This document shows positions 4,218-58,385 of a DNA stretch of 61,134 nucleotides, one piece after another (within the stretch, counting starts at the first letter, position 1; the number at the start of each line of letters is the position of its first letter). The position numbers and the translations under genes were made by a program. The stretch is taken from positions 1 to 61,134 of the forward strand of contig NIVC01002469.1 of the NCBI GenBank assembly GCA_002269645.1, given 5' to 3'. Below the pieces are notes generated by a model. That model saw only the letters and a list, made by a program, of their open reading frames with translations, was not told the DNA's origin and searched no databases. This DNA is from Macrostomum lignano. Its lineage: Eukaryota.

Positions 4218-4427
4218 TCACCTGTACTGCGGAAATTGAGTGCTGCCAGTGGCGGGCACGGGGCCGGGTTCGCATTTCTCCCACTCCACTGGGAACTGCT
4301 GGTCCGCCTCGGCGGAGAAAGCGTTTCCGCCGGACAGCACCGGCGGCGGCGGCACCGGCGGCGGCACCTTGTTGTCGATGTTGTGCGTCTGGTACTGGGC
4401 GGGCTTCTGGCCCCCCATCACCAGGCC
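4218..4427 (-). CDS. VMAT: VMAT exon 10 (last; GLVMGGQKPAQYQ...QFPQYR*)
   Basis: Acceptor CCCGCAG|GGC in phase 0; 70 codons including stop; continues ...PPARMEDR as in the VMAT2 tail PPAKEEKM|AILM. Confidence 0.75.
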   Translation of the reverse strand, partial: GLVMGGQKPAQYQTHNIDNKVPPPVPPPPVLSGGNAFSAEADQQFPVEWEKCEPGPVPATGSTQFPQYR

Positions 4428-4439
4428 CTGCGGGTTTTT

Positions 4440-5190
4440 GCTGGCTGTGTACATAGGGGAGAACCACCCCACTCCAGCCCTGCTGCCTGTGTACATTGGG
4501 GACAACCACCCCAGCCCTGCTGCCTGTGTACATTGGGGAGAACCACCCCAGCCCTGCCGGCTGTGTACATTGGGGAGAACCACCCCACCCCAGCCCTGCT
4601 GCCTGTGTACATTGGGGAGAACCACCCCAGCCCTGCCGGCTGTGTACATTGGGGAGAACCACCCCAGCCCTGCCGGCTGTGTAGATAGGGGAGAACCACC
4701 CCAGCCCTGCTGGCTGCGTACATTGGGGAGAACCACCCCAGCCCTGCCGGCTGTGTACATTGGGGAGAACCACCCCAGCCCTGCCGGCTGCGTACATTGG
4801 GGAGAACCACCCCAGCCCTGCCGGCTGTGTACATTGGGGAGAACCACCCCAGCCCTGCCGGCTGCGTACATTGGGGAGAACCACCCCAGCCCTGCCGGCT
4901 GTGTACATTGGGGAGAACCACCCCAGCCCTGCTGGCTGCGTACATTGGGGAGAACCACCCCAGCCCTGCCGGCTGTGTACATTGGGGAGAACCACCTCAG
5001 TCCTGCTGGCTGTGTACATTGGGGAGAACCACCCCAGCCCTGCTAGCTGTGTACTTTGGGGAGAACCACCCCAGCCCTGCTGGCTGTGTACATTGGGGAG
5101 AACCACCCCACCCCAGCCCTGCTGCCTGTGTACATTGGGGAGAACCACCCCAGCCCTGCCGGCTGTGTACATTGGGGAGAACCACCCCAG
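4440..5190. repeat. ~37-bp minisatellite (CTGTGTACATTGGGGAGAACCACCCCAGCCCTGCCGG) filling most of VMAT intron 9
   Basis: Tandem copies. Confidence 0.95.
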
Positions 5191-5282
5191 CGAAAGTCCA
5201 TGTCGGAGGGAAAATCCCTACTGTAAATCCCTAATTTTGTCACGATGTGCCGCTGATGAAAGGCGTTTTAAAATTGTCTTAC

Positions 5283-5416
5283 GCGATCCTCCATGCGTGC
5301 CGGCGGGTCCCTGAGGAAGTAGTGCAGCGGGGCGTAGATGAATGCGATGATGGCGATGGACCACATCATCCAGCGGAACCCCATCATCTTGACGATGCTG
5401 CCGCTCAGAGCCGGGC
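5283..5416 (-). CDS. VMAT: VMAT exon 9 (GPALSGSIVKMMGFRWMMWSIAIIAFIYAPLHYFLRDPPARMEDR)
   Basis: CCAG acceptor, GTAAGA donor, phases 1/0; matches VMAT TM11-12. Confidence 0.92.
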
Positions 5417-5664: not shown

Positions 5665-5848
5665 CGACCGCAAAGCCGAGGCAGAAGGCGATGTCGGCGA
5701 TCGCGTAGACGCTGCCATAGACGGAGACGTGGCGCAGGTCGACCAGGTAGCCCATGAGCGGCATCATTGAGGAGTCCACCATGCCGATGGCGAAGCCCAG
5801 GCCGAAGTTTGGCACCACCAAGTGGCCCAAGGAATTAGCGAACGGGAT
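5665..5848 (-). CDS. VMAT: VMAT exon 8 ([61 protein letters not shown])
   Basis: Near-identical to the VMAT signature [27 protein letters not shown]; canonical splice sites. Confidence 0.97.
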
Positions 5849-5965: not shown

Positions 5966-6017
5966 AATTATTAAGCAGACGCCCATGATGACCATGCCGA
6001 GACCGGCGCTCAGCCAT
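5966..6017 (-). CDS. VMAT: VMAT exon 7 (RWLSAGLGMVIMGVCLII)
   Basis: TTTCAG acceptor, GTGAGT donor, phases 2/0; matches VMAT RWLCALLGMII. Confidence 0.93.
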
Positions 6018-6042
6018 CTGAAATAGAGGTTGGATCAGGCTG

Positions 6043-6256
6043 GGCGGAGTGAGGTGGCTGTGCGGAGTGAGGTGGCTGTGCGGAGTGAGGTGGCTGTGCG
6101 GAGTGGGGTGGCTGTGCGGAGTGAGGTGGCTGTGCGGAGTGAGGTGGCTGTGCGGAGTGAGGTGGCTGTGCGGAGTGAGGTGGCTGTGCGGAGTGAGGTG
6201 GCTGTGCGGAGTGAGGTGGCTGTGCGGAGTGAGGTGGCTGTGCGGAGTGAGGTGCG
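6043..6256. repeat. 18-bp minisatellite GCGGAGTGAGGTGGCTGT in VMAT intron 6
   Basis: ~12 near-perfect copies. Confidence 0.95.
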
Positions 6257-6401: not shown

Positions 6402-6678
6402 CTGCCAATCCGGAAGGCGAGCGCGCCAAACAGGTTGGTGCCGATCAGGTAGGAGATGGAGCACGGCAAGAAGGCGACCCCCTGCTCCCACTTCTGCGCC
6501 CGCATGGTGTCCTTCATCCAGATAGGCAATGACGGCTCCAGCATGGCGATGCCCATGTTGCCGAAGGTGATGCTGCCGGCGGCCAGCAGGATGTAGGGGT
6601 CGCGCAGCAAGTTTTTCAGCGGGGCGCCTTCTTGCGCCTCGCGCCGGACTCCGGGCTTCAGCACCAGCAGTTGCAGCA
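6402..6678 (-). CDS. VMAT: VMAT exon 6 (LQLLVLKP...[32 protein letters not shown]...[13 protein letters not shown])
   Basis: Clear VMAT TM7-8 motifs (DPYIL, MLEP.LPIWM); canonical splice sites. Confidence 0.97.
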
Positions 6679-6788: not shown

Positions 6789-6878
6789 CGCCGTCCAGCA
6801 GAGCGAGGCCGGCCAGCAGCAGGAAGGCGGCCTCCTTGCTGACGAACTGGTACATCAGGCCGCCGAATGGAGGCCCGA
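6789..6878 (-). CDS. VMAT: VMAT exon 5 ([30 protein letters not shown])
   Basis: GPPFG motif; CCAG and GTGAGT sites, phases 1/1. Confidence 0.95.
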
Positions 6879-7239: not shown

Positions 7240-7573
<334 letters not shown>

Positions 7574-7583
7574 CCAATCTCAC

Positions 7584-7676
7584 CCAGCACTCCCATGGCG
7601 AGCCCGCCCAGAGCCAGGCTCATGGCCTGGCCCCTCTCCTTGTCGTCCGGGTACTGAGTGGCCAGCATGCCCAGTC
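7584..7676 (-). CDS. VMAT: VMAT exon 4b ([31 protein letters not shown]), 93 nt
   Basis: CCAG acceptor, GTGAGA donor, phases 1/1; homologous to VMAT2 [31 protein letters not shown]. Confidence 0.95.
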
Positions 7677-7947
7677 CTGGTCAGGGTTTGATGGTCGTGT
7701 CAGGAAAAAGCCTCTTGAGTTTTTTTAACGACGGTCAGAGCAAATAAATAAAAACGAAAAAGACAGTTGCCTACTAAAATCGAGGTTCAAGGGCAAATTG
7801 AAGAATAATGCTGAAAATCAAGTTCAATCCAGCAGATAAAATGCTTTAAGTGCTTTGAAACTGAAACGAAATAAAAATGTAAGACTCTTGTGCTTTAAAC
7901 AGAAGATTTTGGAGGAAGGCGGGATTCTGTCCCAGCATTCAATGCAC

Positions 7948-8040
7948 CCATGACTCCGAATGCCAAGCCGCTCAGCGCGATGCCGAGGGCGCGGCCTCGC
8001 TCCCCGTCCTCCGTGTAGATGGCTGCCACCATGCCCATGC
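7948..8040 (-). CDS. VMAT: VMAT exon 4a (GMGMVAAIYTEDGERGRALGIALSGLAFGVM), 93 nt; paralogous to exon 4b
   Basis: GCAAG acceptor, GTGCAT donor; same length and phases as 4b; open frame; 17/31 aa identical to 4b. Confidence 0.88.
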
Positions 8041-8074: not shown

Positions 8075-8640
8075 ACTGACGGAGCGGAGTGGGGTGGGTG
8101 GGTGACTGGAGTGAGGTGGGGGCTGGAATGAGGTGGGGGTGGAGTGAGGTGGGTGACGGTATTGAGGTGCGTGACGGTATTGAGGTGGGTGACGAGAGTG
8201 AGATGGAGGACTGGAGTGATGTGGGGGGCTGGAGTGAGGTGTCGGGGCTGAAGTGAGGTGGGGTGGAGTGAGATGGGGGACTGGGTGAGGTGGGTGACGG
8301 TAGTGAGGTGGATGACTGGAGTGAGATGGGTGACGGTAGTGAGGTAAGTGACTGGAGTGAGGTGGGTAGCTGGAGTGAGGGGGTGGTTGGAGTGAGATGG
8401 AGGACTGGAGTGAGGTGGGTAGCTGGAGTGAGGGGGTGGTTGGAGTGAGATGGAGGACTGGAGTGAGGTGGGGGGCTGGGGTGAGGTAGGTGGCTGGAGT
8501 GAGGTGGGGGGGCTGGGGTGAGGTGGGTGGTTGGAGTGAGGTGGGTGGCTGGAGTGAGAGGTAGTTGGAGTGAGATAGGGGACTGGAGTGAAGTGGGTGG
8601 CTGGAGGGAGGTGGGTGGCTGGGATGAGGTGGGTGGGTTG
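8075..8640. repeat. Degenerate GGAGTGAGGTGGG minisatellite in VMAT intron 3
   Basis: Direct. Confidence 0.88.
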
Positions 8641-8814: not shown

Positions 8815-8898
8815 CTGAAACGCTGGAACAGGCGGACCCGATGCCCTGAATGGCCCGGGCAACGAACAGGACACCATAGGACTCGCCGAATGCGAAAA
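8815..8898 (-). CDS. VMAT: VMAT exon 3 ([27 protein letters not shown])
   Basis: MFS/VMAT TM4 motif AR.IQGIGS.CSSV; canonical sites. Confidence 0.96.
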
Positions 8899-8979: not shown

Positions 8980-9504
8980 TGATAGTGGAGATGAACATGA
9001 TGACGAATCCGGAGAACATGGGAATTGAGTAGCCGATGCGGTTAGTGAGCGGCCCCACAAACGGATTCACCATGAGCTGCATGACAGACTTGGCCGCGAA
9101 CATCAACCCAACGTGGATGTTCATCTCCACCAGCTGCTCGTGCCGCCAGTTGTCCGCCTCAACGAAGCAGTCGTGGATCTTGGAGTCGTTGAGCCGAATG
9201 TACTTCACGTGCTCAACGAAGTACCTGTCCGCGTGCAGCACCGGCATGCGGCCGTAAAACCGGTGAAAGCCGCCGCCTTCCCCGGGCCCGCGGCCGCCAC
9301 CGCCGCTGCCGAACTCGCCAGCGACAGACTGGTGGCCCTTCCTGGCCGCCTCGGCCACCCACTGGGCGAACTGGTCCGTGGAGTTGTTGAACAGGTGCGA
9401 GTGGCGGGCCGCGATCGTCTCGTTCTTGGCCAGCTGGATGCACTCGGCGGTGTAGTTGTAGTCCCGGTGCCGGATGTACCACAGGAAGTCCGGGATGATT
9501 GGCA
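8980..9504 (-). CDS. VMAT: VMAT exon 2 (VPIIPDFL...large lumenal loop...[43 protein letters not shown])
   Basis: VPIIP and [13 protein letters not shown] motifs; N-glycosylation sequons in the loop; GCAG and GTGAGC sites. Confidence 0.96.
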
Positions 9505-9629: not shown

Positions 9630-10660
9630 TTTTGCTCCTCTCTCTCCCTGACCCTCTCTCTCCCTGACCCTCTCTCCCCGGCCCTCTCTCTCCCCTGTCC
9701 CTCTCTCTCCCTGACCCTCTCTCTCCCTGTCTCTCTCTCTCCCTGACCCTCTCTCTCCCTGTCTCTCTCTCTCCCTGACCCTCTCTCTCCCTGTCCCTCT
9801 CTCTCCCTGACCCTCTCTCTCCCTGTCTCTCTCTCTCCCTGACCCTCTCTCTCCCTGTCCCTCTCTCTCCCTGACCCTCTCTCTCCCTGTCCCTCTCTCT
9901 CCCTGACCCTCTCTCTCCCTGACCCTCTCTCCCCTGTCCTTCTCTCTCCCCGGCCCTCTCTCTCCCCTGTCCCTCTCCCCTGTCCCCCTCTCTCCCCGGC
10001 CCTCTCTCTCCCCTGTCCCCCTCTCTCCCTGTCCCTCCCTCTCCCTGTCCCTCCCTCTCCCTGTCCCTCTCTCTCCCCTGTCCCTCTCTCTCCCTGACCC
10101 TCTCTCTCCCTGTCTCTCTCTCTCCCTGACCCTCTCTCTCCCTGTCCCTCTCTCTCCCTGACCCTCTCTCTCCCTGTCCCTCTCTCTCCCTGACCCTCTC
10201 TCTCCCTGACCCTCTCTCCCCTGTCCTTCTCTCTCCCCGGCCCTCTCTCTCCCCTGTCCCTCTCCCCTGTCCCCCTCTCTCCCCGGCCCTCTCTCTCCCC
10301 TGTCTTCCTCTCTCCCTGTCCCTCCCTCTCCCTGTCCCTCCCTCTCCCTGTCCCTTTCTCTCCCCGGCCCTCTCTCTGTCCCCCTCTCTCCCCGGCCCTC
10401 TCTCTCCCCTGTCCCCCTCTCTCCCTGTCCCTCCCTCTCCCTGTCCCTCCCTCTCCCTGTCCCTTTCTCTCCCCGGCCCTCTCTCTGTCCCTCTCTCTCC
10501 CTGTCCCTCTCTCTCCCTGTCCCTCCCTCTCCCTGACCCTCTCCCTGTCCCTCTCTCTCCCTGACCCCCTCTCTCTCCCTGTCCCTCTCTCTCCCTGTCC
10601 CTCCCTCTCCCTGACCCTCTCCCTGTCCCTCTCTCTCCCTGACCCCCTCTCTCTCTCCAT
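9630..10660. repeat. CT-rich minisatellite (CCCTGTCCCTCTCTCT-like) in VMAT intron 1
   Basis: Direct; source of RE/RG-rich spurious ORFs. Confidence 0.93.
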
Positions 10661-11272
10661 GTCCCTCTCTCTCTGTTACTCTTTATCCCATCTCTCTCTA
10701 CTCTCTCTATCTCTATCTCCATTTTCTTATATTTTCTCCCATCTCTCTCCCTCCTCTACTTCTGTCTCTGCTTTGATGAGGAATATCCAAAAGCTGTCTT
10801 CACCGAGTCAGTGCTATGGAATTGATGGTCCATCCTTTGTCGCTCTCCTCTCCCTCTCTTTCCTTCTCCATCTCTCTGGCTCTTATAATATCTGATACTC
10901 GTATTTGTATTAAGACCTTTAATCCAATTTTAACAGCTATTTTTCGAGCATTTAAAGAACGCATTTCTAGTCAATGCTTTGCGCCTCTGAAATCTCCTTG
11001 CCTCGCTTCTCTTGTCTTGTCTTGGCCGCCCCCGCCCCGGCCTGGGAGGAGGCTGGCAGGCCCGGGGCAATCACGGGCCGGAGGAAATGATGCAGGAAGC
11101 TGTTGCCCCACGGTCCAGCGCGCTTGCATCGGGTCTTTGCGATCGACTTCTTTATAAGTTCTTTTTTGTTGGGCCATATTGGACAACACTCTTAGATTAA
11201 GACTTTACTCTGATATTCATTGCAGTCTGCTTTTCGCTGCAGCACGCAGTAGCAAAATAGATAAAGGCATCT

Positions 11273-11294
11273 ACAGACAGACAGACAGACACAA

Positions 11295-11343
<49 letters not shown>

Positions 11344-11344
11344 C

Positions 11345-11379
<35 letters not shown>

Positions 11380-11435
11380 GGCAGGCAGGCAGACAGACAG
11401 ATAGACAGACAGACAGACCAGACAGACAGACACTA

Positions 11436-11494
<59 letters not shown>

Positions 11495-11512
11495 AGACAG
11501 ACAAACAAACAA

Positions 11513-11555
<43 letters not shown>

Positions 11556-11558
11556 CTA

Positions 11559-11656
<98 letters not shown>

Positions 11657-11658
11657 GC

Positions 11659-11703
<45 letters not shown>

Positions 11704-11706
11704 CTA

Positions 11707-11739
<33 letters not shown>

Positions 11740-11783
11740 CTCAGACAGACAGACAAACACAGACAGACAGACAAACAGACAGG

Positions 11784-11815
<32 letters not shown>
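11273..11815. repeat. (CAGA)n microsatellite abutting the VMAT exon 1 donor
   Basis: Direct. Confidence 0.97.
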
Positions 11816-11816
<1 letters not shown>

Positions 11817-11820
11817 TCAC

Positions 11821-11989
11821 CAACTGTGGTCAGCAGCATGTTGTCCAGGAACAGCGCTATGAAGACAATCAGCAGGATGAGCTTCCTGGAGTTCCGCATC
11901 CCGGTCAGGTTGTCAAAGGCGTACTGCGCCCGCCCCAGCCAGCTCAGCTTTTTCTCATCGCTGCCGTCCTGGAACTCTCGATAGCCCAT
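11821..11989 (-). CDS. VMAT: VMAT exon 1 (MGYREF...SRKLILLIVFIALFLDNMLLTTV)
   Basis: ATG in ACCATGG context; SRKLIL.IVF.AL.LDNMLLT is the VMAT TM1 signature; GTGAGT donor. Confidence 0.96.
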
Positions 11990-15247: not shown

Positions 15248-16093
15248 TCACTTCTCGTACAGCAGCTTCTTCTCCCATTCCGAGCGCCTGCGGTCGCCCG
15301 CCCGCTGCTGCCGGGTGCCCGACACCAGCTGGCGCAGCAGCTGCCGGTAGCGCTCGGGGATCTGGCCCCGCTGGCAGTGCGCCAACAGCCGGGCCGCGCT
15401 AGGCGACGGGTTGGCCGCGATAGTCGCGGCGACGTCCTCATCGGTGGCTGGCGCAGCCGCCGCGGCGCCTCCTCCAGGCGGGTGCAGAGTGCGCAGCATA
15501 TCGCTGAGGCGCTGCATCATCTGCTCTACCACGGCCTTGTTGTCCACGGAGTCGACCGGTGGCCGCCGTTGCGACAGCAGCACCCGCTGCTCAGCGGCCT
15601 GTCTGCGGCTCTGCGGCTGGCCCAGCTTTCTGGCCACCGCCGGGATCGCTAGCAGAGTGGCCGAAGTCTCCGCGTCTCGCTCAGTTGTTGGCTTGGATGC
15701 GGATGCGATTGGCGTCGCGGTTGGCTGCTGCTGCTGCGATGGTGGCTTCGGCGAAGGCGGCTTTGGCAGAGACGAAGGAGATGACGATGGAATCTCATCC
15801 CTGCTTGAACTGCCGGCCTCTATTGACTTCCAACGATGTCCGTCACCGGTTGGGGATGCCTTTGCTGGCTTAGCTGCCTCAGCCTCCTTGGTTTCACTTG
15901 ATACCACGGCCACCTCTTCGACTTCACCGGTCTTCTCTGGCGCGTCACCAACAACCTCCTCTAGGATAGCATCAAAGTCCTCCGGCGGGCAGCTGGAATG
16001 ACGTAGCTGCCGCCTTTTCATGAACGTCACTTTTTTTCTTGGCTTGCCTGTCTGCTTTCTGCTTCGCATTTTCTGCTGTTGCTTCTGCTTGCT
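15248..16093 (-). CDS. Unknown low-complexity protein, terminal (possibly only) coding exon; first in-exon ATG at 16069 gives 273 aa
   Basis: 846-nt open frame in a GC-rich island between AT-rich flanks; TTTGCAG acceptor at 16094-95; family not recognised. Confidence 0.6.
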   Translation of the reverse strand, partial: SKQKQQQKMRSRKQTGKPRKKVTFMKRRQLRHSSCPPEDFDAILEEVVGDAPEKTGEVEEVAVVSSETKEAEAAKPAKASPTGDGHRWKSIEAGSSSRDEIPSSSPSSLPKPPSPKPPSQQQQPTATPIASASKPTTERDAETSATLLAIPAVARKLGQPQSRRQAAEQRVLLSQRRPPVDSVDNKAVVEQMMQRLSDMLRTLHPPGGGAAAAAPATDEDVAATIAANPSPSAARLLAHCQRGQIPERYRQLLRQLVSGTRQQRAGDRRRSEWEKKLLYEK

Positions 16094-17951
16094 CTGCAAA
16101 GTATAGATAGCGCAGCCTAATCAGTTTTACACTTTGTGAGTTCAATTATTATTAGAAACAGAAAGTTTGCTTTATTTTTGCTTTTGTCTGTGGGAAGATC
16201 GAGTATATCAATTAACAAACAGCTAGGTGACGTTCGAATTTAAAGGCGACTTTTTAGATATTTTTAGAACTCCCTGAATTAAAAGTTTGATCTAAAAATT
16301 ATAGGACACCCACCATTTGAGCTTTTCTAGTGTTTGCTCGCCCCATTTTTTGCTAATTTTACGCATTCGTAGCACTGCTTTGTAAAGTATTTACTCGTAT
16401 ATATAGACTCGAACGTCCAAATAAAGTTCTACCAATGGCAATTTTAGTAAAATTAATTTATCATATGTTGACCGGAAAGATGAACTTCAATGATTATATT
16501 TATATATATTCAATTACAGTCCCCAAAACGCATTTTTATGTTTTGCTTCCGGTCACGATATAATATTGTCTAAAACTACTTCCATATGACTAGCCTATAA
16601 AGATAAGCGGCTGTGGTTTGTTTCAAGTCGAGATAATTATTTGTTCAGACTCGTCATTTGCGTTTCATTCGGAAAGACATTTTGTTTCACTGCTGAAACA
16701 AATGTACTCGATAGCGTTTACGCGATTTTTAACATCGCTTTTTTAAATTGTATATTTTTACTTCGTGCTCGGTCCCACTAATGTCCTTCGCAATCAAACT
16801 TTGGATTGGATACTGATCAAGCAAACTATTAGAATCACAAGTTAGCAGAGGCACAGGCATTATAATTATACTTAGACCTTTATCATAAAAACTGCTACTG
16901 ACATCAAAAGTACTACTGACTACGTTTACGATCGGTATTTTCGGGATGTAGTGAGTGTCCATGTTTTGAAGACTGCATGCACAGGTATGTATTATTAGTG
17001 TATTACTACTTTACAAGTAAACCTAACATAACAAAGTTGGCCAGTTATATTGTTGCAGATATTTGCTGAGTTTTTAACAGAATGAGAATATAAGTCTCGC
17101 CCAAAAAGGCGCCAACGAATAATGAGTAACAAGTGAACTAGGCAAAGTAGCAAAAAATTAAGATATTAATTAAACCCTACTGAGACTTAAAAACTATAGT
17201 AGTGAACAAGCAAAATATATCGGTATACCAATCAATAATTTTTTGTAATGAAATTTATCTTATCTTTTTTTCTGACACTGTATTTACTATCAGTTTCGAT
17301 TATGCTTCAACTTAAATTAGTAAGTATATACTGAGATTTGAGCAATATAGCAATATATTATTATTAGATTCAAATAATAGTTGGATTTGGTTAATTTACA
17401 AAGAAATTTGAAATTAGTTAGAAAACTTCATTTGTTTTTTGCAGTAATTTCTGAGGACATGTGGATCTGTTATGCTCTACTAATTAATGCATTGAAGAAT
17501 GTGCTGCTACTGCCATTTATGCCATGCAATGTATTTAAGAAATTATTGCACTTAAAAGTATATAAGTATTTTTTCTGTTCACTAGATTGAAGTTAAAAAA
17601 CAAACAGTGAGTTTATTTAAGATCATTCGTAGAAATTATATTGAATTATCAGTTATATATTAGCATAATTAAACCAAAGCATATGATTTTTCTGTATATT
17701 TTCAAACAATTTACAAGCCACTGCATTACAAAAAAATATTGAGCGCAAGATTTTTGAATATAAACTTTTTAAAGTTTACTGGTAATTTTATCTGTGATTT
17801 TTAAAAATATAATTATTTTGTCTTTTATCCTGCTTTATTAGTATGACTTCCATTTTTATTGAGTGAAGATTACAATATGTCAGTGTTAAATATTAATTAG
17901 TTACTCAAAACAGTTAAGTACATTTTTATTTATGACAATAAATAGTCACAG

Positions 17952-22498: not shown

Positions 22499-23804
22499 CG
22501 AGGGGCACTAGATAAGTTTTTAGCTGCGGTCAAACCGTTTATTCAAATTAGGCCATATTTTCTGAGCATATTGAATAAGAAGTTTTATCATGGTCCCCAA
22601 AGTTTCATGCACCTAATTGTCACCATTCTCTCACTGTCGCATTTTGTCTCAACAAGGTCTGTGACTCTTTCAGCACTGTAATGGAGCTCAATCGTGAACA
22701 CTTTCGTGCCATGATTTTCTACGATTTTAAGAGCGGCTTGACATTTCACCAGTGCCACGAGCGGCTGTCTGCTGCCTTTCCTAACCTTGCGCCATCCATC
22801 GCCACCGTCACCGCCTGGTTCCGGGAGTTCAAGCGTGGCCGAGACAGCTTGGAAGACGAAGGTCGAACCGGCCGACCTGTTTCATTGACGACACCTGAAA
22901 CTATCGACCGCGTGCGGCGCATGATTGAGGCTGATCGGCGAGTGACGTATCAAACGATTGAGGCATGTCTTGGAATCTCATCGCCGACAGTCGCTTCTAT
23001 CCTTCGTGATCACCTCGCTGTCCGCAAGCTGACCAGTCGCTGGGTGCCGCATTTGCTCACCACCGAGCAGAAGCAGGCCCGCATGAGCTGGTGCCAGGAA
23101 ATGCTGGACAGGTTTGGCGGAGGGACGTCGAAGTCTGTCACAGACATTGTCACATGTGACGAAACGTGGGTGTATTGCTACGAACCCGAGCGGAAATGCC
23201 AGTCGCGTGTGTGGGCTTTTGAAGATGAAGCCCCGCCGACCAAGGTTGTCAGGGGTCGGAGCACTGGCAAGCAAATGGTGGCAACTTTCTTCCGAAAGAC
23301 TGGCCACATTGCGACTGTAGCACTCGAGAGCCAGCGCACAGTGACTGCAGATTGGTACTGCACCGTCTGCCTGCCGCGTGTCATCAGCAGCCTTAAAGAG
23401 GCGCGGCCAAAGTGCGGCGTTCGAGGTCTCTGGCTGCACCAGGACAACGCCAGTGCGCACACGGCGAATCGAACTCGAGAGTTTCTACAGACGGTGGGCT
23501 TCCAGCAGCTCAGTCATCCACCATATTCACCTGACCTGGCACCGTGTGACTTTTTTTTATTTCCATTCATCAAGAATTCCATGCGAGGGTGCCGATTTTC
23601 CTCCGCCGAAGAGGCTGTTGATGCCTATAGATCGGCCGTTGAGGGGGTATCCCACTCAGAGTGGCGCCACTGCTTTGAAACTTGGTTTGAGCGGATGAGG
23701 CGGTGTATCCAAGCTGATGGAGAGTACTTTGAAAAGCTCTGAAAGTTTCATCTTTATAACTGTTACATGTTGACCGCAGCTAGAAACTTATCTAGTGCCC
23801 CTCG
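22499..23804 (+). mobile_element. Full-length mariner DNA transposon, 1306 bp
   Basis: 35-bp TIRs CGAGGGGCACTAGATAAGTTT(T/C)TAGCTGCGGTCAA (22499-22533 and 23770-23804, 1 mismatch), TA on both sides, single internal transposase ORF. Confidence 0.98.
22681..23742 (+). CDS. Mariner transposase, D,D34D, 353 aa
   Basis: WVPHLL, VTCDETW, LHQDNA, YSPDLAPCDF motifs; 34 residues between second and third Asp; N-terminal HTH region. Confidence 0.98.
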   Translation: MELNREHFRAMIFYDFKSGLTFHQCHERLSAAFPNLAPSIATVTAWFREFKRGRDSLEDEGRTGRPVSLTTPETIDRVRRMIEADRRVTYQTIEACLGISSPTVASILRDHLAVRKLTSRWVPHLLTTEQKQARMSWCQEMLDRFGGGTSKSVTDIVTCDETWVYCYEPERKCQSRVWAFEDEAPPTKVVRGRSTGKQMVATFFRKTGHIATVALESQRTVTADWYCTVCLPRVISSLKEARPKCGVRGLWLHQDNASAHTANRTREFLQTVGFQQLSHPPYSPDLAPCDFFLFPFIKNSMRGCRFSSAEEAVDAYRSAVEGVSHSEWRHCFETWFERMRRCIQADGEYFEKL

Positions 23805-37900: not shown

Positions 37901-40900
37901 TCACACTAGGACCCAGCCATCGTCAAGAACTTCGCTGCTGCAGTCGCTGGTCGCCTCACTCCGCGCCGGGTCGGGAGCGCGGGGCTGGTGCGCACGTTTC
38001 AGCTTGTTTGCGTGGACCACCCGACCGGTGTCGCCGTCCTTGTAATCGATAGGACGAACCAGGTAGTTCACCGGCGACGTTCGCTGCAGCACCCGGAACG
38101 GGCCGGTCCAGGGCGCCTGGTGTTTCGGAGCCAGTCCAGTCGTCCTTGAAAGCGCCGACGGCGGAACGAAAACCCATACGAGGTCGCCGACCCGGAATCT
38201 GCACCGCTTGGCCTTCCGGTCGTAGTACCGCCGCTGGCGTCGTTGTGCCGTCGCCATCGATCGCCGCACGGAGTCGTAGGCGCGAAGCAGCTGGTCGCGG
38301 TTGTTGGCGGCGAACTGGCCGACTGTCATTGGCGGCTCCGGTGGCCGGTAGACGACGTCAACTGGAAGCGTCATTTCCCGGCCAGTCAGCAGGCAGTGAG
38401 GAGTAAACCCGGTTGTAGCATTGACGCTGCTGCGGTAGGCCAGGAGACAATGCGGCAGCACTTCTTCCCAGTCCTCCGGCTGAACTGACTGCAGGTGGCA
38501 GCGGAGCATCTGGTGCAGAGTGCGGTGGAACCTTTCTACTAGGCCGTCGCACTGCGGATGGTAGCCGGATGTCCGCGTCTTCTGAATCTCCAGCAGCCGG
38601 CACAGGCTCCTGATGACCTTTCCGTCCACGGCCTTGCCACGGTCGGAGTGCAGAATGTGCGGGGCTCCGAAACGCGTCACCCAGTTGTCGAACAGTGCCT
38701 TGGCGATGGTGGCCGCTTTCTCGTCGGGGAGTGGCACCAGCTCGACCCACTTGGTGAAGTAGTCGACAATGGTGAGCAGCCGATCGTTTCCCCGCCGTGA
38801 CAGTCCAACTTTGACCACGTCGATGCCCACGCGCTGCATAGGAAATCCACTGGCCATAGTCTGCAGTGGAGCTCGGCGCTGACTCGGTGTCTTAGCGCGC
38901 TGGCACACTTGGCAGGACCTGACCGCTAGGCGAACGCTCTCCGCCATTTTCGGCCAGTAGCAACGCTGCTTGAGGGCTGCCAAGGTCTTGTCCTCGCCCA
39001 GATGCCCAAGCTCATGGACCTCCTCGATGAACTCCTCCTGTCTGCAGCGCGGAATCACAGGCACAGGCTTGGACTTCACCAGCTTGTTCAGGGCGCCGTC
39101 GACGAAACACAGGTCGCCGATCTTCTGTGCCAGAATTAGGCTCTCAGGCGACAGTCGGTCACGTCTGCTGGCGCTGAACCTTGTCTTGCCGTTGGACAGC
39201 AGGCGAAACACCGGGCCGATGTCTGGATCACGGAGCTGCAGTTCACGCAGTGACTGAGACGCATCTGACAGCGCCTCGCCTTCCTGAATGGCCTCGTCGC
39301 TGATTTCGTCTTCGCTGGAGTCCTCGCTCTCGCTTGGCCGCGGTTGAAGCTGCTGCTTCCGCCTTGAGGTGCCCTGACGTTCCGGCTCGGCGTTGGTCTG
39401 GGCAGCCGCAGAGGTAGCCGGCGCTGATGTCGCTGCGTTGGTTTGCACGGAGTTGACTCTGACTGTGTCGACCCGGCCAGCAGGCTCCGCGATTGGCACT
39501 GGCGCCTCGACCGTCGGCTCCGTCTGGCAGGCGGCTGTTGAAGTCTCGGCTGGCGCCACCGCTGTCGTCCCTGGCCGACAGACTCGACACTGGCTGGTGC
39601 ACTTTTGCTCTCGCCGAGAGAGGGCGTCTGCGTTGCCGTGTTGGCGGCCTCGGCGAAAGACGACCTTGAAGTTGAACTCATCGAGCAGCTGCAGCCATCT
39701 GGCCAGCTGGCCTTCGGGCTCTTTGAATGCCAGCAGATAGGTGAGCGCCTGGTGATCCACTCGAACGGTGAAGGCGCGCGGCAGCAGGTAGCTCCGGAAC
39801 TTCTTAACAAACTCGACAACAGCCAGGAGCTCGCGCCGCGTCACGCAGTAGTTGCGCTCAGCTCTTGACAGGGCGCGGCTGGCGTAGGCGATAACCCGCT
39901 CTTCGCTCGCCTGCACTTGCGACAGCACCGCGCCGATTGCGCAGTCACTTGCGTCGGTGTCGAGGATGAATTCGGAGCCCGACTCGCTCATGTCCGGGAA
40001 CGCCAGGATCGGAGCTGACAGCAGCGCTTGCTTCAGCTGGTTGAAGGCCGCCTCGGCTTCTGGCGTCCACTCGAAGGGCGTAGGCAGTGTAAGGCGGCGC
40101 AGAGGCTCGGCGATATTGGCGTATTCGCGCACAAATCTTCGGTAGTAGGAGGTCATGCCGAGGAAGCTCTTGACGTCCTTCGAGCTCCGGGGCACCGGCC
40201 AGTCTCGCACAGCCGCGGTTTTGCCCTCATCGACGGTGATGCCGGTCTTGCTGACGCGGTGGCCCAGGACTAACATGCTGGTATTTGCAAATCGGCACTT
40301 TGACGGCTTGAGGCGCAGGTTAAACTCGCGCAGTCGCTCCAGAACTGAACGCAGCCGATCGTTGTGCTGGCCGATGGTCTGGCCCATCACGATGACGTCG
40401 TCAATGAACACCAGACAGGCCTGCCACGTCAGCCCCCGGAGCACCAGCTGCATGAGCCGCTGAAAGGTGGCTGGTGCATTCCGGAGTCCGAACGGCATCA
40501 CGTTGAATTCAAACAGGCCTTCATGGCACACAAATGCCGTCTTCTCCTTGTCTCGGTCATTCATCTCGACTTGCCAGTAGCCACTTTCGAGATCCAGCGC
40601 TGAGAAGTAGCTGTTTCCTTCGAGGGCATCCAGAGTGTCATCGATGCGGGGCATCGGGAAGGCATCGGGCTTGGTCACCGCGTTCAGCAGGCGGTAGTCC
40701 AAGCAAAATCTGGCCGACCCGTCCTTCTTGCGAACCAGAACTATCGGAGATGCCCAAGGTGATGACGATGGTCGGACGACTCCCTTTGCCAGCATCTCGT
40801 TGACCAGCTCCTTCTGCTGTGCGATCGCTGTGGGAGCCAGGCGCCGCAGTCCTTGGCGAATTGGCCTGGCGTTGCCTGTGTCGATCTCGTGCTTTAACAA

Positions 40901-41839
40901 TTGGGTGCGGCCTGGGTTGCTGGGGCTCGCGAATACGTCACTGAACTCCAGCAGAAGGCGTTCGACTTGCTGCCGCTCCTCGGTTGGGATGTCATCGGCG
41001 ATTTGCACCTCGTCCTGCCAGGTCGTTGCAGTAGTCGGATCTGCCTCGCTGGCATCACCAGATCCTCCGGCTTGCAGGTGCGCCAGGGCTCGGCCAGACA
41101 GCGGGTTGAAGTTGCCGACGATGTCGCCCTCCTTGATCTCGACTGTCTCATCTCTGGTGTTGATGACAGCAACCCCCATTCCGTGGTCAACCAGCTTGGA
41201 CACGCTGCGGCCGATCATCACTTTGGCCGCCTTGCTGCCGCAGACAACGCCTGGTGCCTCCGAGTTCGTCCACGCTGCCGCGCTCGCTGGCCGCACCGGA
41301 ATGATCCAGCCATCGCCTGGCTGCAGTCGAACCGTGGCTGCCGCTGCCAGCTTGCAAGTCTGGGCCGCCTGCCTGGATGTCCGCATTGGCAAGGTGACGC
41401 CGAGGCCGTTGAACTCGAGAATGCCTGATCTCAGGTGAATCGAAATGTCAAATTTGTTTAGGAAGTCGCAGCCCAGAATTACCGGTGCGCTGAGGCAGGT
41501 CACTGCCAGGAATCTGTGTCGAAAATGAAGCGGACCAAGAAAAAAACTTATCTCAATTTCGCCCAGCACTGTTGCTTGATTGCCGCCCACGCCATAGATG
41601 GTTGTTGAGCTGGGTCTCAGCTGCCGTCTGAGCCTGGCCGAGTGCACGATGTCGCCGTTGATGCAGGAGATCTCGGCACCGGTGTCGATCATGCACGGCC
41701 GGCGTTTTCTGAGCATGCGCGAGGTGATGAAGCGCACTTGGTCGGGCTGGCAGCTGGGGCGTGGGGGCTGGGCCGAACTGTTTAGTGCTGAGAGGGCCGG
41801 TGCTGGCCCATTGGACCAGCCCCCCCAGCGTTTGGGCAC
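37901..41839 (-). CDS. Gypsy Pol (protease, RT, RNase H, integrase with GPY/F); expressed by -1 frameshift
   Basis: IDTGA, FIDD, TDASD, DALSR, HHCC zinc finger, GID..HSD.G..E, W.GPF motifs; uninterrupted frame. Confidence 0.98.
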   Translation of the reverse strand: MPKRWGGWSNGPAPALSALNSSAQPPRPSCQPDQVRFITSRMLRKRRPCMIDTGAEISCINGDIVHSARLRRQLRPSSTTIYGVGGNQATVLGEIEISFFLGPLHFRHRFLAVTCLSAPVILGCDFLNKFDISIHLRSGILEFNGLGVTLPMRTSRQAAQTCKLAAAATVRLQPGDGWIIPVRPASAAAWTNSEAPGVVCGSKAAKVMIGRSVSKLVDHGMGVAVINTRDETVEIKEGDIVGNFNPLSGRALAHLQAGGSGDASEADPTTATTWQDEVQIADDIPTEERQQVERLLLEFSDVFASPSNPGRTQLLKHEIDTGNARPIRQGLRRLAPTAIAQQKELVNEMLAKGVVRPSSSPWASPIVLVRKKDGSARFCLDYRLLNAVTKPDAFPMPRIDDTLDALEGNSYFSALDLESGYWQVEMNDRDKEKTAFVCHEGLFEFNVMPFGLRNAPATFQRLMQLVLRGLTWQACLVFIDDVIVMGQTIGQHNDRLRSVLERLREFNLRLKPSKCRFANTSMLVLGHRVSKTGITVDEGKTAAVRDWPVPRSSKDVKSFLGMTSYYRRFVREYANIAEPLRRLTLPTPFEWTPEAEAAFNQLKQALLSAPILAFPDMSESGSEFILDTDASDCAIGAVLSQVQASEERVIAYASRALSRAERNYCVTRRELLAVVEFVKKFRSYLLPRAFTVRVDHQALTYLLAFKEPEGQLARWLQLLDEFNFKVVFRRGRQHGNADALSRREQKCTSQCRVCRPGTTAVAPAETSTAACQTEPTVEAPVPIAEPAGRVDTVRVNSVQTNAATSAPATSAAAQTNAEPERQGTSRRKQQLQPRPSESEDSSEDEISDEAIQEGEALSDASQSLRELQLRDPDIGPVFRLLSNGKTRFSASRRDRLSPESLILAQKIGDLCFVDGALNKLVKSKPVPVIPRCRQEEFIEEVHELGHLGEDKTLAALKQRCYWPKMAESVRLAVRSCQVCQRAKTPSQRRAPLQTMASGFPMQRVGIDVVKVGLSRRGNDRLLTIVDYFTKWVELVPLPDEKAATIAKALFDNWVTRFGAPHILHSDRGKAVDGKVIRSLCRLLEIQKTRTSGYHPQCDGLVERFHRTLHQMLRCHLQSVQPEDWEEVLPHCLLAYRSSVNATTGFTPHCLLTGREMTLPVDVVYRPPEPPMTVGQFAANNRDQLLRAYDSVRRSMATAQRRQRRYYDRKAKRCRFRVGDLVWVFVPPSALSRTTGLAPKHQAPWTGPFRVLQRTSPVNYLVRPIDYKDGDTGRVVHANKLKRAHQPRAPDPARSEATSDCSSEVLDDGWVLV

Positions 41840-56599: not shown

Positions 56600-57185
56600 A
56601 ACCCGTTTGGAACCAGCTTCTCCATTTGAACACCTAAATTGCTTCCCATTTGTTCACCCAACCAGCTTCCCAATTGGAACTCTCAACCAGCTTCCCCATT
56701 GGAACTCTCAACCAGCTTCCCCATTTGAACACCCAACCAGCTTCCCATTGAAACACCCAACCAGCTTTCCCATTGAAACACCCAACCAGCTTCCCATTGA
56801 AACACCCAACCAGCTTTCCCATTGAAACACCCAACCAGCTTCCCATTGAAACACCCAACCAGCTTTCCCATTGGAAGACCCAACCAGCTTCCCCATCGGA
56901 AGACCCCAACCAGCTTCCCCATCGGAAGACCTAACCAGCTTCCCCATCGGAAGACCCCAACCAGCTTCCCCATCGGAAGACCTAACCAGCTTCCCCACCG
57001 GAAGCAGCCAGCTTCCCCAATCCCCATTGGAAGACCCAACCAGCTTCCCCACCGGAAGCAGCCAGCTTCCCCACCGGAAGCAGCCAGCTTCCCCACCGGA
57101 AGCAGCCAGCTTCCCCATTGGAAGACCCAACCAGCTTCCCAATCGAAACCAACCATCTTCCCCACCGGAAGCAGCCAGCTTCCCG
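56600..57185. repeat. ~26-bp minisatellite (CCAACCAGCTTCCCCATTGGAAGAC-like)
   Basis: Direct. Confidence 0.93.
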
Positions 57186-57200
57186 GACTGGAACGCGGAC

Positions 57201-58385
57201 CTGGTAGTACTTGGGCAGGAAGGCCAGGAAGCCCATGAAGGCCAGGAACTCCAGCGCGGCGCCGATCAGCAGCGCCAGGAAGGTGAGGTTGCCGGCCAGC
57301 CGGCGCAGCGTGTGCGACAGGCCGGTCTTGACCAGGCTGGCCGGGTCCAGGCTCACCACGCTGTTCAGCAGGTCGACAGCCGGCGTCGGGCGGTCTCCGT
57401 TCTCGGCGCCTGGGGCGGCGGCCTCGGCTGCTTTGGCTGGAGTCGGCAGCCCCGACTTCGATGCGTCGCAATCAGCTGCTTGATGATTCTGTTGCTGCTC
57501 CTGCGGCGCCGCGGAGCCGTCCTCGCACAGGGCTCGGCCGTCGGGTTCGTCGAGGTCCGAAGCCGGGGGAAGCCGCTTCTCCGTGGGCAGCTCGATCTCC
57601 TCCGGCTGGCCGTCATCCGGGCGGGGCAGCTGCCTGGGGAAGCAGAACATGGTCAGCGAGCAGCAGGCGGTGAGGCCGGAGAGGCACACGAAGCCGAGCC
57701 ACCAGGCGCCGACGCCGGTGTGTTCGGCGGCGCCGCTCAGCAGGCTCTCGGGCAGCATGGCCAGCTGGCCGCCGATGATGTACCCGGGCACCGGCGCCAC
57801 GAAGCGGAGGGCCATCATGGCGGATATGTACACCGGGGCGCGCACCTTTGATACGTGGTCGTCGATGTAGGCGAGGCCCAGGTTCCAGAACGGCGTGCTG
57901 CCGACGCCAACCAGGAAGGCGCCGAGCACCAGCACGAAGTAGGCGACAGCCGACTGGCGGCTGAGCGGCTGCTGGCCGTCGGCAGCGACTGCGGCCGCGG
58001 CAGCCGACGTGGTGGCAGTGGAGTTGCACAGCAGTCCGGCTGAAGGGGAGCTCGACTGGGAGGCCGCCGAGCCGCCCGCGCCAGCCGGCATGGGGCCAAA
58101 GAAATAGTATGGACTGCTCATGATGAGAATGCCCAGCGACAGGAGCAGCCCGAGGCCGCCCATTGTCCGCGGCCGGTGGGCCTGGCGACCGTAGAAGCTG
58201 ACGGGCAGGACGCCCAGCAGGTAGCCGAAGTCGCTGGAGCCCTGCAGCAGGCCTGACAGCTTGCTGGGCAGGTTGAAGCGCTTCTCCAGGGTCGTGAGCA
58301 TGGAGATCAGGTAGGTGTCGAAGCTGCCGTAGACCAGGGCGAACAGGCCCAGGCAGAGTGTGTAGGCGTTGATGTTGCAGGGCAT
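57201..58385 (-). CDS. OATP/SLCO organic anion transporter, coding exon 1 (total ~710 aa)
   Basis: TTLEKRF.L.S..SG, SFYGR..HRPR, LG..YIDD.V....P.Y, GAWWLGF and LPRP motifs; donor CAG|GTCCGC. Confidence 0.95.

Follow-up and report, generated by a model that had tools for sequence, protein, structure and literature searches.

In the flatworm Macrostomum lignano, the gene for the vesicular monoamine transporter (VMAT) has two adjacent, diverged copies of its fourth exon, 4a and 4b. We consider it somewhat probable that the two form a lineage-specific, tandem-duplicated substitution exon, in which 4b would provide the major form of the transporter and 4a a minor form with altered gating. We infer the splicing of 4a, its exclusivity with 4b and the functional difference from genomic sequence.

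The window analysed here is the entire 61,134-bp contig NIVC01002469.1 of the M. lignano assembly GCA_002269645.1. The VMAT locus was found by tblastn with a human VMAT2 sequence, which served as a guide for exon finding only. Exons were then read off the DNA, where every one of them is flanked by AG and GT, and assembled in code. The gene occupies the minus strand from about 12.0 kb to 4.2 kb, with ten coding exons and one extra, 4a:

Exon 1, 11821..11989, minus strand: ATG at 11989; N-terminus and TM1; product matches the annotated protein
Exon 2, 8980..9504, minus strand: lumenal loop, TM2 and TM3
Exon 3, 8815..8898, minus strand: N-terminal part of TM4; donor 8815 would serve 4a or 4b
Exon 4a, 7948..8040, minus strand: upstream unannotated copy, 93 nt, phase 1/1, AAG acceptor, GTGCAT donor
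Intron 4a-4b, 7677..7947, minus strand: 271 nt, 38% GC, without homology to the other flanks
Exon 4b, 7584..7676, minus strand: downstream copy, in the annotated protein; 93 nt, phase 1/1, CAG acceptor, GTGAGA donor
Exon 5, 6789..6878, minus strand: remainder of TM5 with the antiporter motif GPPFGG, start of TM6; common acceptor 6878
Exon 6, 6402..6678, minus strand
Exon 7, 5966..6017, minus strand
Exon 8, 5665..5848, minus strand
Exon 9, 5283..5416, minus strand
Exon 10, 4218..4427, minus strand: stop codon TGA

With 4b, the product matches the deposited M. lignano protein PAA57588.1/PAA65333.1 exactly over its 605 residues, and all splice junctions of the model other than those of 4a are thereby validated. 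The gene is an SLC18 VMAT, with the major facilitator (MFS) fold and 12 transmembrane helices, and is nearer to the VMATs than to VAChT: among solved structures, those of human VMAT2 (E 1e-170) and VMAT1 (4e-156) match best, with VAChT trailing at 4e-100. Pfam MFS_1 is recorded for the deposited protein, and an AlphaFold2 model of the 4b isoform reached a pTM of 0.74, with pLDDT about 90 in the helical core. Residues D49/N50, K195, R246, E368, D455 and D482, which correspond through the alignment with VMAT2 to human D33/N34, K138, R189, E312, D399 and D426, occupy invariant columns in an alignment of 54 sequences that includes the M. lignano protein.

The earlier note had described two 93-nt exons of phase 1/1 with AG/GT sites, lying 271 nt apart, and both direct reading and rebuilding in code bear this out. 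Exon 4a runs from 8040 to 7948 (acceptor cccgcaAG/G, donor G/GTgcat) and exon 4b from 7676 to 7584 (acceptor tgaccAG/G, donor G/GTgaga). Exon 4a encodes GMGMVAAIYTEDGERGRALGIALSGLAFGVM (31 residues). On the rebuilt exons the two peptides are those originally proposed, identical at 17/31 positions, and either copy, assembled with the remaining exons, completes the expected 605-aa open reading frame. At the nucleotide level 61/93 positions are identical and 32/93 differ, with no stop codon in either exon. The local alignment of 4a with 4b scores 32, where 1000 shuffles gave a maximum of 20 (p < 0.001), and each exon independently matches the human VMAT2 segment 203-233. In the 30 and 60 nt of intron to either side of the exons, similarity does not rise above the null (p 0.56 to 1.0). 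Recent gene conversion between 4a and 4b was considered and rejected, as no identical run is longer than about 8 nt.

The correspondence of exon 4 to human VMAT2 203-233 was upheld by alignment to the full-length chain 8ucj_A, where a 38-aa query covers residues 203-239 and the exon itself 203-233. This segment comprises the end of TM4, a cytosolic turn and the start of TM5. In the AlphaFold2 model of the 4b isoform, exon 4 (residues 260-290) forms a helix end at 260-267, a turn at 268-270 and a helix start at 271-290, with pLDDT 87-94; as modelled, exon 4 is the cytoplasmic tip of the TM4-TM5 hairpin. Cryo-EM work on VMAT2 places M204, M221, M403 and Y422 in the inner cytoplasmic gate, the salt bridges D214-R357 and R217-D411 in the outer gate layer, and, in the pocket for tetrabenazine and substrate, L228 and V232 (PMC10959523, PMC11695631). 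The gate and pocket residues listed beforehand agree with these papers for M204, M221 and R217 (gate) and for L228 and V232 (pocket), but L225, also listed, is not named as functional in either.

In human VMAT2 numbering, the 14/31 differences between the copies (4a/4b) are 204 M/L, 207 V/L, 209 A/T, 210 I/Q, 212 T/P, 213 E/D, 215 G/K, 219 R/Q, 221 L/M, 222 G/S, 223 I/L, 226 S/G, 230 F/M and 233 M/L. The swap of methionine and leucine at the equivalents of 204 and 221 is present as described (M/L in 4a, L/M in 4b); it affects two of the four inner cytoplasmic-gate residues, and the turn also differs in its pattern of charges. D214 and R217, which form the outer-gate salt bridges, and L228 and V232 of the ligand pocket are the same in 4a and 4b. 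The original suggestion that the two isoforms have different substrate or inhibitor profiles is weakened by these identities: the differences lie in the inner gate and the cytosolic turn, and a change in gating or kinetics is therefore a better prediction than an altered pocket. A resemblance of 4a to VAChT, also suggested, is marginal, since 4a scores 35 bits against VAChT (30 for 4b) but 46-48 bits against VMAT2. Metagenomic VMAT fragments from unidentified eukaryotes with small introns and AT-rich sequence (L009, L011, L013; P0212, P0213) carry GLGM, that is, leucine at the position of human M204, like 4b; gate position 204 is therefore not strictly invariant in animals.

How do the existing gene models treat the two exons? 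Exon 4b is present in the transcript-based annotation. Among the four M. lignano models in the protein cluster, three contain 4b and none contains 4a. The fourth, the older UniProt entry A0A1I8HYR0, is the only one without 4b: it skips both copies and retains intron 2, and the latter feature makes it probably a prediction artefact. The exact 4a isoform is absent from a collection of 15 billion proteins, which seemingly holds no transcript-derived fragments of this gene, and a search with a 47-aa 4a peptide returned only two short unrelated VMAT fragments. The control search with the 4b peptide also missed the annotated protein, so the absence of 4a from this collection carries little weight. 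Current M. lignano models thus miss what looks like a conserved coding exon.

Is 4a under constraint, or is it decaying? Both copies look as though selection has kept them as coding sequence. Their differences fall at codon positions 1/2/3 in the ratio 14/3/15, and GC3 is 0.87 in 4a, in 4b and in the whole coding sequence, next to an intron of 38% GC. Against a profile of 46 distinct outgroup segments, 4a retains 11/11 invariant positions, while 4b has lost one (M204), and the replacements in 4a are conservative or at variable sites. Compared with the bilaterian consensus segment, 4a is identical at 20/31 positions, no lower a share than the protein as a whole has in common with its homologues (52-61%). 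Starting from 4b, neutral drift produced an open frame scoring at least as high as 4a in 0.1% of trials at 16 substitutions and in 0/20,000 trials at 22 or 32 substitutions. Starting from the parsimony ancestor, an open frame with a score at least that of 4a arose in 1.3% of trials in the scenario with the fewest changes on the 4a branch and in at most 0.01% in the other; retention of the invariant positions had P 0.005 to 1e-4. The claim of selection on both copies is supported by these simulations (P about 0.013 to <1e-4 overall), by base composition and by the lost homology of the flanks. The pairwise dN/dS between 4a and 4b, which the earlier note had proposed to compute, is 0.47, a value that indicates relaxed constraint.

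That relaxation bears on a first alternative, which we regard as unlikely though deserving of serious weight: 4a may be a silent relic, a functional alternative or redundant copy for much of its history that is now unspliced, its weak splice sites being the onset of decay, so that only the 4b protein would be made. The omission of 4a from all available gene models would fit such a history, as would its splice sites, with an AAG acceptor and a donor, GTGCAT, that lacks +4A and +5G. So would its greater divergence: 4a scores 69 bits against the family profile, compared with 85 for 4b and 85-103 for outgroups, and parsimony assigns it 7-11 of the 14 amino-acid changes. A sequence long released from constraint would sit poorly with the rest of the exon, in which AG and GT are intact, GC3 is at the level of the coding sequence despite the 38%-GC intron beside it, and all invariant family positions are kept. 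Among the signs of decay sought (stops, frameshifts, indels, lost splice sites, a neutral substitution pattern), 4a presents none; its weak donor and its AAG acceptor are the sole hints in that direction. Because the drift simulations reject neutrality over the whole 4a branch, any inactivation would be recent. The three M. lignano paralogues are 100% identical in 4a and 4b, but their introns diverge by only about 1%, so that zero changes in 93 nt are expected about half of the time; at about 99% identity, these paralogues have no power on present-day constraint.

The donor of 4a is the weakest of the gene, whose other donors almost all have the +4A and +5G that it lacks. The pyrimidine content at its AAG acceptor (0.55) is no worse than for 4b or for exons 2, 9 and 10. 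As to what could make the choice between 4a and 4b exclusive, the 271-nt intron between them makes steric exclusion unlikely, and both introns are GT-AG, with no U12-type mechanism detected. Since 93 = 3 x 31, the frame stays open in a transcript with both exons (636 aa) as well as in one that lacks the two (574 aa), and neither the reading frame nor nonsense-mediated decay (NMD) would enforce exclusivity. Inverted repeats between the three introns were at chance level. In duplex energies over whole segments there was one nominal outlier, the 5' part of intron 3 against the 4a-4b intron (z = -2.65); the best local 30-nt intron duplexes were no better than shuffles, and locally no long-range RNA pairing rose above shuffled controls. 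Docking/selector-type RNA pairing is thus not supported as the exclusivity mechanism, and our search of the locus for a steric, U2/U12, NMD or RNA-pairing mechanism found none.

These results leave room for a second alternative, in which 4a is an ordinary cassette exon that is not strictly exclusive with 4b, and the 636- and 574-aa products are by-products, either mis-folded or regulatory. The frame survives double inclusion as well as double skipping, so NMD would not remove these transcripts, the search for a steric, U12-type or RNA-pairing mechanism came back empty, and A0A1I8HYR0 does lack both exons. We nevertheless find this reading improbable. In a rough hydropathy scan, the product with both exons gains a hydrophobic span, placed between two charged turns, and the product with neither loses one; either change would, we infer, invert the topology of the C-terminal half of the transporter. 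The earlier claim that both exons together break the MFS topology stands as regards the extra span, with the qualifications that the frame remains open and that the disturbance downstream is a prediction from the scan. A cassette exon, moreover, would not account for the family-invariant residues kept in 4a, and the skipping model, with its retained intron 2, looks like a prediction artefact.

The last alternative, an artefact of assembly or haplotype collapse, which could be entertained since M. lignano is a hidden polyploid whose PacBio assembly is difficult and since exon 2 of one paralogous contig contains a 1-nt indel and exon 1 is present there in an additional copy, is extremely improbable: the two exons are just 66% identical in nucleotides, a unique 271-nt intron separates them, and all three near-identical, independent contigs bearing the gene carry both exons, 100% identical and in the same arrangement, so that the pair is not an assembly artefact. 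The contig with the indel is the third gene copy, NIVC01002640.1, where a 1-nt deletion in exon 2 (9745-10268) and an extra, frameshifted copy of exon 1 (2743-2910) about 4.5 kb upstream explain a truncated 463-aa model. This copy is either a decaying homeologue or the product of a PacBio indel error.

Tandem arrays are present in five introns of the VMAT gene and make up a large share of its intronic DNA. The arrays recorded in the window are the following:

4439-5191: 37-nt unit x 20
6038-6254: 18-nt unit x 12
7241-7573, minus strand: (GATA)n x 83; begins 10 nt past the 4b donor
8097-8636, minus strand: 18-nt unit x 30, C/T-rich on the gene strand; fills most of the intron between exons 3 and 4a
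9637-10673: 16-nt unit x 65, in intron 1
11273-11816: (ACAG)n x 136, in intron 1

The region of the 4b donor, CUGG/GUGAG (7571-7595), shows complementarity of up to 14/17 nt to repeat units in the intron-3 minisatellite (8090-8297), with a duplex energy no better than that of shuffles. Other features of the contig include an uninterrupted 1312-aa ORF with domains for aspartyl protease, reverse transcriptase, RNase H and integrase (37901-41839, minus strand), which is the pol of a Ty3/gypsy-type LTR retrotransposon and looks intact, and a 353-aa ORF with Mos1-type HTH and DDE transposase domains, a mariner/Tc1-like DNA transposon (22681-23742, plus strand). A 467-aa ORF (56982-58385, minus strand) belongs by its match (E 5e-64) with the organic anion transporters of the OATP (SLCO) family, which makes it a second transporter gene on the contig. 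Upstream of VMAT and on the same strand lies a single-exon ORF (15248-16099, minus strand), annotated as a gene of 273 aa, with no Pfam match.

We compared the locus with VMAT genes of other flatworms and spiralians, as had been proposed; all those examined have one copy of exon 4, and none has the duplicate. The trematodes Schistosoma curassoni and Clonorchis sinensis (two assemblies) and the annelid Capitella teleta each have a single 93-nt exon with identical boundaries, and in the nemertean Tubulanus polymorphus exon 4 is fused to exon 3, with no second copy. No second copy appeared either in the metagenomic eukaryote VMAT loci that reach the exon-4 region (L009, L011-L013, L015); L010, a non-VMAT MFS match, and L014, which ends before exon 4, were left out of this comparison. 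Within species, the exon-4 peptide never varies across ten protein clusters (molluscs, schistosomes, Lingula, insects and a crustacean), many of them with several annotated isoforms. A model from Popillia japonica was considered as another exon duplication and rejected, since the peptides of exons 3/4 and 5 recur within it as exact repeats; it is most likely an assembly or annotation artefact. Among the lineages sampled, the duplication is, by these comparisons, specific to the macrostomid lineage. Between 4a and 4b, pS is 0.49 and dS about 0.8, close to saturation at synonymous sites, which together with the lost similarity of the flanks argues for an old duplication.

For the substitution exon that we favour, the sequence of events would be as follows. 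The 93-nt exon for the cytoplasmic TM4-TM5 tip would have been copied in tandem in the macrostomid lineage, and both copies would then have been retained as coding sequence. Exon 3, through its donor at 8815, would join either 4a or 4b, and the chosen exon would join exon 5 at acceptor 6878, each choice yielding a 605-aa transporter of 12 helices. With its consensus-like splice sites, 4b would give the major form; 4a, with its AAG acceptor and GTGCAT donor, would give a minor or cell-type-restricted one. The functional difference would lie in gate energetics, transport kinetics or regulation, and not in the binding pocket. As a tentative extension, it is possible that this single flatworm gene makes two transporters (M204/L221 and L204/M221, with a recharged turn) for different types of aminergic neurons, tuning the kinetics of vesicle loading or drug sensitivity.

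VMATs are the targets of drugs such as reserpine, tetrabenazine and amphetamines, and their cytoplasmic gate was defined only recently by cryo-EM. If our reading is right, the M. lignano pair would be the first pair of substitution-exon isoforms known from SLC18 and would amount to a natural experiment on how the cytoplasmic gate of a VMAT works: a selected pair of gate segments in an otherwise identical protein would offer two matched variants for probing the roles of 204, 221 and the TM4-TM5 turn in gating and kinetics. M. lignano permits transgenesis and in situ work, so that the use of the two exons by cell type could be mapped. As an event in one flatworm lineage, the duplication would have limited general reach unless 4a is expressed. 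The earlier note knew of no precedent in SLC18, and our literature search agrees: it found no paper on mutually exclusive VMAT or SLC18 exons, the sole co-occurrence being ChAT in ticks, and nothing about a Macrostomum VMAT or the gene id Mlig020917.

Exon substitution is exemplified by SLC12A1 (A/B/F), SLC25A3 (3A/3B) and SLC8A1 (A/B). Substitution of tandem-duplicated exons has been catalogued in membrane transport genes (PMC9741552, PMC8373072, PMC5740500). The M. lignano exons resemble the catalogued cases in being adjacent homologues of equal length and phase, in differing by mostly conservative changes with core residues retained, in that the piece to be exchanged would be a transmembrane or gating segment of a transporter, and in having outlasted any similarity of their introns. 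They differ in that use of the second exon is here a prediction from genomic sequence, in that the duplication is lineage-specific, whereas the catalogued events are mostly ancient, and in that an exon length divisible by 3 leaves the pair with no frame-based safeguard.

Two further systems invite comparison. Vertebrate VMAT1 and VMAT2 (SLC18A1/A2) are two monoamine transporters that differ in kinetics and pharmacology, partly through residues of this segment, and the M. lignano isoforms would likewise be a pair of functionally different transporters. In the vertebrate proteins, V232L contributes to the selectivity of tetrabenazine for VMAT2 over VMAT1 (PMC10959523). V232 is unchanged in the M. 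lignano pair, whose differences lie instead at the inner gate (204, 221) and in the TM4-TM5 turn; moreover, VMAT1 and VMAT2 are separate genes that differ throughout the protein, whereas the flatworm isoforms would differ in a 31-residue segment only. In Drosophila, one gene gives two splice proteins, VMAT-A and VMAT-B, which are used in different cell types and differ in the cytoplasmic C-terminus, involved in trafficking, with no duplicated exon. M. lignano would likewise derive two proteins from one invertebrate VMAT gene by alternative splicing, but with the difference placed in the transmembrane core and supplied by a duplicated exon.
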